A stretch of 64,000 nt of DNA from contig NC_043011.1 of assembly GCF_006345805.1 (NCBI RefSeq), forward strand, positions 66,724,464 to 66,788,463. Reading direction: 5' to 3'. Under the pieces are notes generated by a model. It was not told the DNA's origin, did not search any database, and saw only the letters and a list, made by a program, of their open reading frames with translations. Source of the stretch: Octopus sinensis. Lineage: Eukaryota. A program made the position numbers and the translations under genes. Below, one piece after another: positions 1,662 to 63,763 of this stretch (positions within the stretch are counted from its first letter, which is position 1; every line of letters begins with the position of its first letter).

Positions 1662-4600
1662 TTATGCATGTGTGAGCAATAATGTTACAAAAGCAGCTCT
1701 GGATACTGGCTGACCGCTAACCTGTAAATGGAAGAAAAGTTTCGTTATTTGAGATTTAATAAAAACAATGACGTAACGTGAATTAGGTGAGCCTTTTTGC
1801 TAGTGAGATGTTTTACTGTGCAATTCTTATCACTTCCATTAATTTCCGAATAGTCTATGTTATCTTCGATGATATAAACACAAAATATATTAATCAGGGC
1901 CACATATAATTTTATGTTACTTATCAGGATTTGACAAGGTAGATTCCCCTATCAGGCGGAAGTGAATGTTGAGTTTTTTAAACATATACGCTATGTTTGC
2001 ATAGGTGCGCTTTCTTGTGCATACCCTATCTTGTACTTTTATTGATTTTAAGCCCGAACGTTGACGTAGGTTTACTCGAATTGTTGCTAGATTCCATTTA
2101 CACCCGCAGATGCTAACAATTGTTGAGGTAGAATAACTACGGTAATTACCAAACCAGCAGCCTTGAGATCATTGTTCATTAAGGGGAAACTACAGAATCC
2201 TATTCTTAAACACTTTCTTTTCAGTTATATACACGTAATAATTAGCTGTACCATTGAACAATTGTTCGATTTCAATTATATTTCGACGGGCTTGTAACCC
2301 CATAAATATTATATCATATGTATTATAAAGATTATACATATGGATGTTATCAAAATATATTCAAAATATTCCTGTACGGATAACTCTAGCGCATTCGTAT
2401 TATGAAACACTCAACGCATTCTCATAATTCTAATTCCTATGCTTACGGTGTAATTCAATGCTATTGTAACTACACGGCCTCTTAATATAATTTTCTAAAA
2501 CATAGAAACCATCTTTTAACTTTCTCAATCAAGGAAGGTTAAATAAATAACTGACGCGGGTATTTTACTGTGAACACTTCTACTTCAGTTAGGACGTTAT
2601 AATGCACCCTTTTGCTTTCCAGAGGCTTTGCATTATATTTTATGCCCATGTTACCGTTATCGAAGTCATATTGAAATCGATTACCATACTATGTTAATAA
2701 TAAAAAAAATATAGAGCGTCAATTACAACAGATAGGTAGCGAGAGTATTGTAGTGTATGAAAATGGCATTTATACTTCAAATCGATATGGTTGTCATATA
2801 TTGAAGACTCAGCGGCAGTAGAAATACTTTGCTTGCTCCAACTATGTTCCAGACGAGCTTGCCCGACGGAGAAGTATTCTGAAAAATATTTCGAATTGTG
2901 AAAAATTATTTTCAAAAGCAATAATAGATTCTCAGTCATATTCCCAGGCGAAAAATTATCCTCTGCTGAATATAGAAACCATAATATTATAATCGATTAG
3001 AAATCTTACAAACAAAACAAAATAGATTACACTTTACTGTTCGACTCTTTTACTTGTTTCAGTCATTTGACTGTGGCCATGCTGGAGCACCGCCTTTAGT
3101 CGAAGAAATCGACGCCAGGACTTTTCCTTTGTAAGCTTAGTACTTATTCTATCGGGGTTTTTACCGAACAGCTATGTTCCGGGGACGTAGACACACCAGC
3201 ATCAGTTGTCAAGTGATGTTGGGGAATAAACACAAACACGCACACACACATACATATATTCGATCGGCTTCTTTCAGTTTCCGCCTACCAGATCCACTCA
3301 CACGTCTTTGGTCTGTCTGAGGCTATAGTAGAAGACACTTGCCCAAGGTGCCACGCAGAGAGACTGAACCCAGAACCATGTGGTTGGTAAGCATGCTACT
3401 TACCAAACAGCCACACTTCCGCCATTACGTTTATTTCACTGCGGTGGCCCCTATAGCCTAATATTTACTTTTGAATTGAAAGAAAAGAAGATCGTAGCTA
3501 AACAGCTTTCGTTCTTTGTCCGCTCGATTGTTCCTTCAAGGATGATGTAAGGAAAATTAATGATTGTTTAGAATTATTAAAGAAAAGAAAACTTTTTGAA
3601 CCGTTAATTTCTGAATCGCTCATTTTAAATGGAAACATAACGAACACGATGCAGGGTACTTACCGGGCATTTCTTAGAACGTATGGTTTTGAAAGTGTAC
3701 TTGCAAAACTTCAACGATTTCTCGAAGCACTTTTCAAATTCATCGAAATTACTGGAAGGTAAAACCATAAATAAAAATTATACATTGCGGCATTCTTGCT
3801 TTGTTTATATTTTTAAAACCTCGATTCTGGAGCCAAACTCGACTTTCATATACCTTCTTTTGCATTGTCTCTCCGGCATATATATTCCTTTACCTGTTTC
3901 AGTCATTTTGGACAACAGCCCAGTTGGACAGACGCGTTTAGTTGAGCAAATCAAGCCCAGGACTTATTCTTTGTAAGCCTTGAACTTATTCTATCGATCT
4001 GTTTTGCCGAACCGCAATGTTACGGGAACGTAAACACACCAGCATCGGTTGTGAAGCGTTGTTGAAGGGGATACACATGCAATTATATACTCACACATAC
4101 ATATATATATCGATAGATAGATAGATAGATAGATAGATATACGACGTGTTTCTTTCAGCTACCAAATCCACTCGAAAGGCTTTAGTCGACCCTAGGATAT
4201 ATTAGAAGACACTTGCCCCAAATCCCGGTCAATCGCGTCAGACAATTGCTAGCGGAGATATCACGTTTCACTTGGTCTAGTTTAAAAACAAAATATTGTC
4301 TATATTTAAACGGACAAAGAGATTCGATATATTTATCAATGGACATATTAGGGTTCATTGCCGTGATTCCATATAAATACATGCAGCATTTTGGAATAGA
4401 TTTATAAAAGGAAATATTTGTCAATAAGCGAGTGTATAAATATTAAGTAAATACTCAATCGTAAAGTACAATCATATATAAATAAATAAATAAATAAATA
4501 AATAAATATATATATATATATATATATATATATATATATATATATATAATAATATATATATATATGTATATATATATATATATACATATATATACATACC

Positions 4601-7600
4601 TACATACATACATATATATACATATTATACATATATAAACACTTATAAATTTAACTATAATTACCTGCAATATAACTCTGGATTCAATACAGGGTCTGCA
4701 TAGGTAGAAGGGCATTTACGTCTTGCAGATTGAAGGTATTCCCATTTAAATGATATTACGCCTAAAATATGTGAGGTTCCTCTTGAAAATTTTTTAAGAT
4801 TTTTCCGAAATTAATTTTTTTGTTAAATTAGAAATCATTTCCGTTTGATAGGCATTCATATGATACATATTATAGATGTGGGTGTTTGATGTTCTGTTGT
4901 TTGATGTTTGATGTTTGATGTTCTGTTCTGTGTATGTTTGAGTGTGGTGAAGATGTTTCAATATAGTTCTGACCGTGTATTATGTAACTATAATTACCTG
5001 CAGAATATCTTTGATCGAGGGTCTGCATAGGTAGAAGGGCATTTACGTCTTGCAGATCCAAGGCAATCCGGTTTCGCTGTCATTACGCCTAAAATATGAG
5101 GTTTCTCTTGAAAATTTTAAAAGATTTTTCCGGAATTAATTTTTTTGTTAAATTACAAATCATTTCCGTTTGATAGGCATTCATATGATACATATTATAC
5201 ATGTGGGTGTTTGATGTTCTGTTCTGTGTATGTTTGAGTGTGGTGAAGATGTTTCAATATAGTTCTGACCGTGTATTTGTCACAATTTATACTGTGTTTT
5301 TCAGCTCACATAAGTACGCCACTTTACAGGAAACACGCCTCGTATCGAATGTCCTCGTTCATCACGTTTCTCACTCCGATACATAATGGTGTTTGGAAAT
5401 GGCCTCCATTTGTTTACCAGGATTATTATCGATAATATTCAGTGTTCGTTGTATAAACTGCGGTATCTTAACGCTTTCTACTGGAGGAATATTCCATTCA
5501 GGGTCTACCATATCGGATTGCAAAGGTAATTCAGTTGCTTGTACAACTGCGTGTTCACAATGGGAACGACAGAATGAGCTCTCCGTTTTGCCCTTGTAAC
5601 AATCTTGTTCCGTCAATTTGTCAGCATCACAAAGACCTCGAAACAATTTCACAATACATTTTTAATAACCCTGTTCAGGTACCTATCACAATCTTGTTCC
5701 TTGGACGTGGTATAAGAAGTTTTATATTATGAACACAACTCATAGACCAAAATATTTTGATTACAGATATTGTTTTATAAAGTTCTCATGTAGAATATAT
5801 ATATATATATATCTATATATATATATATATATATATATATATATATATATATATATATATATATACATATATATATATATATATGGGGGGGGTTATCATG
5901 TAGAATATGTATATATAAAAATTAGCAAAGAACGTAATAAAATGTTTCTAAAGAAAAAAATGAGTTAACTCCTCTAAAGTTGATTTATCAGATAACGGAA
6001 TATTTGTTACCTTTTGGAAGAATTATTTAATAATAAACGCTAATGACTGAATTCTGTGGAAAAGTTTCTATTCTATTTGGCAACGGATTTCTTATGAACA
6101 TGTTTAGATGTTTCCATTAACGCGCAAATAGTGAGCGGTGTTCCGCCGGGCACTGTTTTGGGACCCCTTCTGTTCATAATGGCCCTCTCAGACATGCCCT
6201 CAGCCACGCAGAGAGCCACGATCACAAGTTATGCAGATGATACAAAAGTTTGACAGGAAATACAGAACCCTGAGGACACTAAACGCCTGCAATGTGAGCT
6301 GGACAAAATATACAAGTGGGCTGAAAAGAATAGCATGCAGTTCAATGCTGAAAAGTTTCAAGCTTTATACTACCAGCATGCAAAACTAAATGCAATACCA
6401 AATGAATACACTGAACCCGGAGGAACTGCAATCCCAGAGGCACAATCAGTGCGTGACCTGGGTATTTACATGAGTGATGACGCAACCTTTCGTGTACATG
6501 TTGCTAAATTAGCAATGAAATGTAGACGACTGGCCGGATGGATTCTCAGAACCTTTAGAACAAGAGAACAAGAAACCATGATGGTCCTCTGGAGGACACT
6601 TGTCCTAAGCCACTTTGACTATTGCTCTCAGCTATGGTCACCATCCAGTGTCAAGCTGATCACAGAACTTGAGGCGATCCAACGTAGCTACACGAAGAAG
6701 ATAGCCTCTGTGCAGAATATAAGCTACTGGGAAAGACTCAAGAGATTAAAACCCTATTCCTTGGAGCGTAGGCGAGAAAACCATGCCATGATATACAACT
6801 GCAATATCCTGGAAGGACTTGTCCCAAACTTTGGCATCGAGAGTTACACAAATGCCAGAACTGGGCGCCACTGCATGGTGCCTAGGACTCCAAATTTGCC
6901 ATCAGGATGTAGGACAAGATACTGTGATAATCTGGGCTTCCGAGGACCACAGCTCTTCAATATCCTCCCGAATAACCTAAGAGACCTGCATGGGTTGTAT
7001 GCAGATGTCTTTAAAATGAAACTGGATCTCTTCAGGAGGTGCAGATGAGGGCAGCTGCATCGAACTCTCTCATGCACCAAATGGCAGTTGCTAAAAAGCA
7101 TTCGTGAAGTAAAACCATGTAGCAACACCAAATGGCTGTGCCCCAGCATGGCCACAGCTCGTGAGCTGAAACTAGAATCAATCAATCAATCAATCATATA
7201 TATATATAACACTTGTTTCATGGGTGTGCGGTAATAAGTTTGCTTTCCAAACACATGGTTTCCTACGTCCGGCCTTGTACGTGGAACTTGACTGTCACTA
7301 CATAAAACTGGTGATTTCGTAATGCATTAAAGAACTCGTTTATTTAAATATTGTAAATCTGTAACAATTGCAAATGATAAAATGTGAAAAGGGGAATTTG
7401 TTGGAATTTTATTGATTAATATATCACTTTGCAAGAAAAGTACAAGTTCACTGTGTCCATTCTTGGCCCTCTAATTGATGAAAATGGCACTCTACAAGAG
7501 AAAGTCGAAACCATGTATGAGATACAGCAGAAAAAGTACTGCTCTGTTATCAGCAATCTCAATATGGCCTATCTGGTCTGTATCAGTCAGGTTCATCTTC

Positions 7601-63703: not shown

Positions 63704-63763
63704 TTATGTATATGTGAGTAATAAATTGACAACTGCAGTTGCGAATACTCATCATCTACCAAC
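63704..63763 (-). CDS. Exon-4 homolog of the next array copy (rest of gene beyond window); early stops
   Basis: Acceptor ttctttcatttacAG; 60 nt aligns with the other exon 4 copies but reads VGR**VFATAVVNLLLTYT*. Confidence 0.55.

Follow-up and report, generated by a model that had tools for sequence, protein, structure and literature searches.

Cephalopod genomes hold lineage-specific gene expansions, and most of the genes concerned are without an assigned function. Among better described families of small extracellular proteins, the RGMs are anchored in the membrane by glycosylphosphatidylinositol (GPI), and the micro-exon genes (MEGs) of schistosomes encode small secreted proteins, for the most part from numerous symmetric micro-exons no longer than 36 nt. 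The MgCRP-I peptides of the mussel Mytilus galloprovincialis are short and secreted, with a conserved leader and a hypervariable mature region in which six invariant cysteines form three disulfides (PMC4558851). The N-domain of RGMB is a three-helix bundle with three disulfides, which binds the fingers of GDF5 and BMP2 (PMC7354924). Here, we describe a stretch of 64,000 nt from the genome of Octopus sinensis, referred to as the window (NC_043011.1, scaffold C15, positions 66,724,464-66,788,463, within a 2.72-Gb assembly of 13,516 contigs). We propose, with a probability of roughly 0.7, that it is part of an Octopus-restricted tandem array of five-exon genes, whose products are secreted, probably GPI-anchored, and serve as a diversifying module for extracellular binding.

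The array extends well beyond the window. It spans at least 66.66 to 66.98 Mb, i.e., at least 320 kb on a single scaffold, of which the window covers only about a fifth. In the 200 kb to the right, the same exon sets continue up to the far end, and a DNA search with the segment comprising promoter and exon 1 recovered at least 20 copies, all of them on C15. These include copies at 66.66-66.93 Mb, one of which lies 2.5 kb left of the window; the copies on that side are known from search matches alone. A second cluster on C15, at 50.51-50.55 Mb, holds three copies of the segment with 72-74% identity on the opposite strand. Further family loci on C15 were noted at 63.03-63.09 Mb, where the annotated two-domain gene LOC115219848 is accompanied by relatives at 63.05 Mb. 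On the minus strand, each gene of the array occupies 8-11 kb and contains five short coding exons. Profiles of the exon classes, built from the exon with 25 nt of flank, recover every copy with nhmmer E values from 1e-16 to 1e-39, so that chance is excluded.

A sequence-only reading of this DNA had proposed a hidden tandem array of four-exon genes for small six-cysteine proteins, and all 18 exon coordinates listed there were read back on the minus strand. The 37-nt exon 1 at 10172, 33730, 53762 and 62535 runs from an ATG to a GT donor in each case. The copy at 20944 had been listed with 43 nt, which turned out to be a guessed extension of a 37-nt exon with its ATG changed to AAG. Exon 2, with 97 nt at 4665, 16087, 29039 and 48796 and 91 nt at 4998, is bordered by AG and GT throughout, and so is the 88-nt exon 3 at 3664, 26915 and 43043. 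For exon 3 at 14886, the length of 87 nt stands and the canonical border does not, its acceptor being AT instead of AG. The 60-nt exon 4 at 1662, 13214, 25293 and 63704 extends from AG to TAA, the last of these copies being interrupted by two in-frame stops. The splice phases 1/2/0 are compatible on read-back, and genes A and C can be spliced into open frames of the predicted kind, namely 91 aa (exon 2 at 4998) or 93 aa (exon 2 at 4665) for A and 93 aa for C.

What has to be revised is the number of exons. Several Octopus relatives carry 14-15 additional residues between the sequences of exon 3 and exon 4, which led to a search of the intron and to the location of an overlooked coding exon, here called E3b, in every gene. 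E3b is in phase 0 on both sides and is thus a true cassette. In the resulting model, the 37 coding nt of exon 1 and the start of exon 2 provide the signal peptide, and exons 2 (91-97 nt) and 3 (88 nt) together code for the domain, which has about 55 residues and six invariant cysteines. E3b (24-54 nt) adds a linker rich in Ser, Thr, Pro and Gly that ends in a cluster of small residues, and exon 4 (60 nt) a hydrophobic tail of 12-14 residues which reaches the C-terminus. The product has roughly 105 residues and ends 30-35 residues past Cys6.

Splice borders, open frames and the profile recovery of all copies bear out the earlier claim of a tandem array of real split genes. Moreover, the six cysteines are invariant in 28 divergent domains, frames remain open in copies of about 30% identity, splice phases are conserved, and the same exon structure, including alternative isoforms, is found in RefSeq models of O. 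bimaculoides; a dN/dS of 0.44 between orthologues and a confident fold prediction add to this. Such features effectively refute the view that the array consists of repeated non-coding or transposon-borne sequence with fortuitous frames and AG/GT borders, although flanking intron is conserved as well as the exons, several copies are broken, and retrotransposon remnants crowd the intervals between them. We assign next to no probability to this view.

The donor of E3b differs between genes: B, K and L have GT, A, C and G have GC, and D, F, H, I and J have AT. If E3b is read past its donor, a conserved in-frame tail follows up to a stop in every subfamily. Three C-termini are possible, namely E3b joined to exon 4, read-through of E3b, and skipping of E3b as in the four-exon model; for gene D, read-through is the sole option. 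Among the O. bimaculoides RefSeq proteins, which were mapped onto their genomic locus, XP_052830201 has the structure E1-E2-E3-E3b-E4, and XP_052830203 and P0012 consist of E1-E2-E3 followed by E3b read-through. Skipping is annotated for a single O. bimaculoides paralogue, LOC128250805, whose isoforms X3 and X4 differ solely by a 9-aa cassette. This makes a direct join of exon 3 to exon 4 plausible as a minor isoform, not as the main product. As E3b also carries the small-residue cluster needed by a GPI omega-site, the products of 91-93 aa are at best a skipped isoform.

At the protein level, the pattern C-x7-C-x12-16-C-x8-C-x6-8-C-x11-C holds for 28 domain copies, taken from the window, the flanking DNA and the database, with the six cysteines invariant and little else conserved. 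The signal-like N-terminus and the six cysteines noted from sequence alone are thus confirmed, and the helical fold is supported by prediction: for the isolated domain, AlphaFold2 (26 aligned sequences) predicts three helices, at residues 2-10, 22-39 and 41-54, with a pLDDT of 88.8. The full-length prediction, based on three sequences, is poorer (pLDDT 69). Relatives also include secreted proteins with two, four and eight tandem domains. By inspection and in a Kyte-Doolittle window, exon 1 is hydrophobic, and the 12-14 residues of the exon 4 tail have a mean hydropathy of at least 1.6. With this tail reaching the C-terminus, the layout is that of GPI-anchored proteins, i.e., a signal peptide and a terminal hydrophobic stretch without a cytoplasmic tail. 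According to a crude in-house rule, omega-like triplets (SSG, GNT, SNS, GVS) occur solely with E3b, and none is present in the join of exon 3 to exon 4. GPI anchoring of the isoform with E3b and exon 4 therefore appears plausible from these features; the read-through tail is less hydrophobic, and only weakly so.

The following course can be envisaged. The precursor would enter the endoplasmic reticulum and form three disulfides. In the isoform with E3b and exon 4, the tail would probably be exchanged for a GPI anchor, by which the helical domain would be displayed at the cell surface; release is a possible fate of the read-through isoform. The domain would then serve as an extracellular binding module whose surface diversifies between fixed cysteines. 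A different fate of the tail, as a propeptide or sorting signal that is removed, would turn the products into purely secreted effectors (toxins, antimicrobial peptides, pheromones or mucus components), changing in an arms race with prey, microbes or mates. The weak hydrophobicity of the read-through tail fits such a role, as does the want of a hydrophobic tail in the two-domain LOC115219848, in the eight-domain LOC128248155 and in a 76-aa open reading frame (ORF) from a contaminant contig described below. The mature domain is also hypervariable between fixed cysteines behind a conserved signal exon, which is typical of families of secreted effectors, MgCRP-I among them (PMC4558851). However, the hydrophobic tail of exon 4 is conserved in every subfamily and follows a small-residue cluster and a polar spacer, the layout of a GPI signal, and no likeness to toxins or antimicrobial peptides emerges from Pfam at E <= 10 beyond single chance-level matches. 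We consider purely secreted effectors unlikely, yet worth keeping in view, and favor probable GPI anchoring.

The family has a narrow distribution. An exhaustive HMMER profile run against 1.84 billion representative proteins yielded 14 matches at E <= 1e-3, 13 of which are from Octopus, mostly O. bimaculoides RefSeq entries labeled "uncharacterized protein LOC…". The fourteenth stems from a 322-bp contig, JAENPT010000070.1, which is filed under a Campylobacter fetus assembly and is surely eukaryotic contamination of that bacterial assembly. It encodes an uninterrupted member of 76 aa with a signal peptide, a domain 38% identical to that of gene C and a stop three residues past Cys6, and looks like a spliced copy. 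The family thus appears, among the proteins found so far, to be confined to Octopus, in agreement with its initial description as lineage-specific. The attribute "hidden" is justified for O. sinensis, for which neither an exact model nor a relative at 90% or above is on record, and is not for O. bimaculoides, where RefSeq holds the uncharacterized LOC genes. The family is also unnamed, as had been supposed: in Pfam scans of the window proteins, 10 relatives and 28 domain units, no family passes except RGM_N for a single protein, P0005. DUF19 (PF01579) and Ly6 (PF00021) have no match even at E <= 10 in the same scans, and saposin, defensin-type and toxin families are absent or give single chance-level matches. 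A literature search on the RefSeq LOC genes and on octopus cysteine-rich, GPI or tandem families returned nothing relevant.

Two further Octopus genomes allow the gene models to be compared. The locus in O. vulgaris (OX597831.1) is collinear with the window at about 98% identity; C and D are identical or nearly so, and B is intact. An O. vulgaris entry of 155 aa, P0001, termed a "hypothetical predicted protein", takes exons 2 and 3 from the gene C orthologue and has unrelated exons at its start and end, and the proper exons 1, E3b and 4 of this gene are present and intact at the locus. In O. bimaculoides, XP_052830203 (CM046618.1) connects exon 1 of one gene with exons 2, 3 and E3b located 12.7 kb downstream and jumps a complete intervening set of family exons. 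Either read-through splicing between genes or an artefact of the annotation accounts for this model.

Constraint on the family is weak, and its evolution is fast. Between paralogues, exons 2 and 3 are 72-73% alike, as opposed to 79-83% in 100 nt of intron on each side, and exons 1 and 4 are conserved to the same degree as their flanks. In a Nei-Gojobori analysis of exons 2 and 3 combined, the pair of genes C and D has a dN/dS of 2.55, with 56.5 non-synonymous and 6.5 synonymous differences (Fisher p = 0.013), and their signal-encoding exons 1 are nearly identical. This is good evidence for at least one episode of positive selection. K and L differ by nine non-synonymous and no synonymous changes, for which dN/dS is not defined and which is not significant.

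The array also evolves by birth and death. Within the window, three genes (A, C and D) are intact and two (B and F) are pseudogenes, and a lone exon 1 is orphaned; of the copies outside, three (G, H and J) are broken and two (I and K) are intact, the latter two not being included in the structure and profile searches. A block of about 98 kb, running from window position 31233 through 64000 to position 128980 of the joined sequence and holding gene C (exon 1 only) through J, is repeated with 97-99% identity at joined positions 129084-226725, right after a scaffold gap of 100 N at 128984. Each copy of the block is about 2% from O. vulgaris, and the copies differ from one another by 1-3%. The repeat represents a recent segmental duplication or else a haplotype retained in the assembly, and in the latter case the copies to the right of the window may have been overcounted.

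Several observations weigh against the proposal of an array of diversifying, probably GPI-anchored binding modules. Splicing in O. sinensis is deduced from the conservation of splice sites and from the gene models of a sister species, and none of 13 alternative O. sinensis protein models has an exact record in the protein collection. The E3b donor of A and C is GC rather than GT, which renders the junction of E3b to exon 4 uncertain, and no AATAAA lies within 700 nt of the read-through stop in these two genes. The tail is short, and GPI anchoring is derived from the crude, unvalidated in-house rule mentioned above; the binding function is one that we infer entirely. As regards diversification, the remaining paralogue pairs have a dN/dS of about 1, and the orthologue values are 0.66 for gene B (O. 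vulgaris vs. O. bimaculoides) and 0.44 for gene I (O. sinensis vs. O. bimaculoides), so that positive selection is shown for a single pair only. Finally, structural comparison gives no significant match: Foldseek against the PDB returned five matches for the domain model, none of them an RGM and all with E > 7, and for the full-length model ranked RGMB (6z3m, 6z3j) second to fourth without significance (E 3.7-4.6, TM 0.21-0.25).

The features of the window are compiled in Table 1.

Table 1. Family exons and retrotransposon remnants in the window (window positions; E1-E4 and E3b, exons; donors and acceptors as read on the minus strand).
Feature	Position	Strand	Remarks
Gene A, exon 1	10172..10208	-	37 nt coding, MKHFIVFVFLIS, signal peptide; ATG...GT donor; nhmmer E 3.5e-23
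Gene A, exon 2b	4998..5088	-	91 nt, Cys1-Cys3; AG/GT; open 91-aa frame with six Cys
Gene A, exon 2a	4665..4761	-	97 nt; AG/GT, same phase; Cys1 replaced by Tyr
Gene A, exon 3	3664..3751	-	88 nt, Cys4-Cys6
Gene A, E3b	2837-2878	-	42 nt
Gene A, E3b with read-through	2777..2878	-	donor GCAAGC; stop at 2777; architecture as in XP_052830203
Gene A, exon 4	1662..1721	-	60 nt, hydrophobic tail; ATTAAA and AATAAA 181 and 393 nt downstream
Gene B (pseudogene)	13214..20980	-	E1 20944-20980, E2 16087-16183, E3 14886-14972, E4 13214-13273
Gene B, E3b	14417-14458	-	42 nt; donor GT
Gene C	25293..33766	-	E1 33730-33766, E2 29039-29135, E3 26915-27002, E4 25293-25352; intact
Gene C, E3b	26467-26508	-	42 nt; donor GC; read-through stop at 26407
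Gene D	42478..53798	-	E1 53762-53798, E2 48796-48892, E3 43043-43130, terminal exon 42478-42564 (ANAAGSVGISKTFLLPLSIQYITITKLL-stop)
Gene D, E3b	42541-42564	-	24 nt; donor ATAAGC
Orphan exon 1	62535..62571	-	MKYSMIIFFLIS; donor GTAGTT
Pseudogene F, exon 4	63704..63763	-	VGR-stop-stop-VFATAVVNLLLTYT-stop; two in-frame stops
Reverse-transcriptase remnant of a non-LTR retrotransposon	38805..41241	+	frameshifted; RVT_1 E 3.5e-12 and 8.8e-16
Second reverse-transcriptase remnant, same element family	56003..57815	+	RVT_1 E 6.2e-30; downstream of the orphan exon 1

In gene A, exon 2 is present as a tandem duplicate with the copies 333 nt apart. Exon 2b is likely the functional one, and the downstream exon 2a may be a mutually exclusive exon or a decaying copy; joining both would shift the frame. 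Genes A and C share, at 97.9% identity, a 2.8-kb segment with E3b and exon 4 in it (window positions 220-3007 and 23873-26637), and exons 1-3 of the two genes are only about 70-80% alike, a pattern that points to gene conversion or to partially duplicated 3' ends. Gene B has three lesions, namely the change of ATG to AAG, a CAG acceptor turned into CAT, and a 1-nt deletion which destroys the codon of Cys6. Its O. vulgaris orthologue is free of all three, with the ATG, the CAG acceptor and an 88-nt exon 3 with Cys6, and its O. bimaculoides orthologue is the annotated XP_052830201. B is therefore either a very recent pseudogene, or its lesions are assembly errors. Every exon of gene C is kept in O. 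vulgaris, where exons 2 and 3 lie within P0001 at 95% identity.

Gene D is complete with 102 aa, its read-through frame being open and an AATAAA lying 256 nt past the stop; the O. vulgaris copy is identical. With its ATAAGC donor, E3b of this gene cannot splice onward, and neither a profile search nor a scan for splice sites and ORFs revealed a family-type exon 4 at 33800-43042. The expected place of this exon is occupied by the retrotransposon remnant at 38805-41241, which is also found in O. vulgaris. A profile search located no exons 2-4 downstream of the orphan exon 1. Of pseudogene F, E3b and exon 3 lie just beyond the edge of the window, and its exon 3 lacks Cys5.

The region upstream of the genes is shared as well. 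About 50-160 nt 5' of each exon 1 (e.g., 33767-33926 and 10209-10368), every copy, the orphan among them, has a conserved sequence. It contains a TATA-like element, CATATTTAAT, at a variable distance of about 45-70 nt before the ATG and, farther upstream, a near-palindrome, TGACATTGCATGTCATTGATCA, and is likely a shared promoter. Introns and intergenic gaps are occupied by retrotransposon remnants, for two of which RVT_1 was confirmed (Table 1); more frameshifted non-LTR remnants were seen at 60711-61400 (minus strand) and 6254-7048 (plus strand). GC skew reaches +0.32 in the 4-kb bin 20001-24000 and amounts to |0.1| or less in the other bins, and the ORF at 22165-22644 (minus strand) has a GIY-YIG-like motif by eye and no Pfam match.

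The one known family that recurs in the searches is RGM_N (PF06535), matched by 12 of the 28 domain units with a best E of 9e-4; no other family has more than one match. The window proteins reach 13.9-16.4 bits (E 0.011-0.067) and single domains 10-16 bits, below the gathering cut-off of 24.2 bits, and the 37.9 bits of P0005, a four-domain protein of O. vulgaris, are summed from four weak repeats. Among PDB sequences, the N-domains of RGMB, RGMA and hemojuvelin are the top matches of the domain profile, with borderline E values of 0.016-0.05, and neither the full-length family profile nor P0005 alone has a match. Against a small RGM_N alignment, composed of the human proteins RGMA and RGMB together with the RGM encoded in the octopus genome, hhalign reports a probability of 51.6% and an E of 1.5e-4 over 29 columns which span C3-C5 only. 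With the corresponding small RGM_N model, real domains score 7.15 bits on average, compared with 1.73 for shuffles in which the cysteines are fixed (standard deviation of the set mean 0.54). The RGM_N signal thus exceeds mere cysteine spacing, though the domains are not independent samples.

Like the N-domain of the RGMs (PDB 4UHY, 4UHZ, 6Z3J), the octopus domain is small and extracellular, has six cysteines and is predicted to form three helices. Both have the identical spacing C3-x8-C4-x7-C5, and in both C3 is preceded by an aromatic residue and followed by a motif of the LR type ([FY]C..LR.[YF]..C). The outer spacings differ, with x7 vs. x4 between C1 and C2 and x11 vs. x21-23 between C5 and C6 (human RGMA, RGMB and octopus RGM), so that helix 3 is much shorter in the octopus family. 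The latter also lacks the RGD/RGN loop and the long alpha-3 helix which make the ligand contacts. No RGM_C match was obtained in the Pfam scans, and no C-terminal or partial vWD-like domain with its autocleavage site follows the octopus domain. RGMs, moreover, are conserved and few in number, whereas the octopus family has expanded in tandem and evolves fast.

The shared core spacing and motif, the recurrence of RGM_N in the Pfam, PDB-sequence and hhalign comparisons and in the shuffle control, and the GPI anchoring common to RGMs could be taken to mean that the octopus proteins are true RGM family members, i.e., stand-alone N-domains which bind TGF-beta-family ligands as BMP/GDF co-receptors. 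The three helices, three disulfides and GDF5/BMP2 binding of the RGMB N-domain would fit this (PMC7354924). Yet single domains stay below the cut-off, the outer cysteines are spaced differently, the ligand-contacting elements and the RGM C-terminal domain are absent, Foldseek gives no significant match, and the octopus has a canonical RGM elsewhere (C2:164.24 Mb, 40.2 bits). Membership is very unlikely on this balance. A distant relationship of the domain, as a stand-alone relative of the RGM N-terminal domain, is suggested by these comparisons and not established by them. In view of the scores below cut-off, the differing outer spacing, the missing ligand features and the Foldseek result, we call the domain "possibly RGM_N-like" and refrain from assigning it to the family.

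A more far-reaching scenario would be that octopuses took a stand-alone, three-helix RGM_N-like module, put it on a GPI anchor and expanded it to dozens of rapidly diversifying tandem genes, together with secreted multi-domain versions, as an unrecognised family of surface binding proteins. We hold this to be distinctly unlikely; in such a case the proteins could be a diversified set of traps or co-receptors for TGF-beta/BMP ligands or a lineage-specific recognition repertoire (self/non-self, chemotactile or gamete). If the RGM_N lead holds, the family forms a link between a conserved co-receptor module of development and a surface repertoire in rapid evolution. Should the lead fail, the domain is new and unnamed all the same and merits a Pfam entry.

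Independently of this lead, the analysis provides a clean and checkable gene model in a genome without annotation of the family, improved over the four-exon model by one exon and an alternative C-terminus. The RefSeq models of O. bimaculoides already contained the same exons, unnamed and unstudied, and the mis-joined exons in the annotation of a neighboring species are revealed here. Also defined here are the six-cysteine three-helix domain, the alternative C-termini and the birth-and-death turnover of the array.

Comparison with the other described systems places the family more precisely. Ly6/uPAR proteins resemble it in gene and precursor layout: a small precursor has its signal peptide, disulfide-rich domain and GPI-type tail each on a separate short exon, and the genes are often clustered. 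In contrast, the Ly6 fold is beta-rich and three-fingered, with 8-10 cysteines and a CCxxxxCN end, and the octopus family has six cysteines and three predicted helices. Membership of Ly6/uPAR was considered and rejected, given that Pfam has no match at E <= 10 and that the predicted fold is all-helical with six cysteines. The schistosome MEGs share with the octopus genes the very short exons, and E3b can be skipped in frame. The octopus exons, however, measure 37, 91-97, 88, 24-54 and 60 nt, and only E3b and exon 4 are multiples of three. As three of the five coding exons are asymmetric, skipping yields variants at E3b only, and the term "micro-exon gene" used in the sequence-only reading fits loosely: it suits E3b as the only symmetric cassette and not the asymmetric exons of 37, 97 and 88 nt. 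MgCRP-I is likewise a mollusc-lineage family with six cysteines, a conserved leader and a hypervariable mature part; the octopus family has no sequence match to it in any search, and differs in its own cysteine spacing, its predicted all-helical fold and its hydrophobic tail. In sum, the octopus array belongs to a familiar class, that of lineage-specific tandem families of small, disulfide-rich, secreted or surface proteins which evolve fast.

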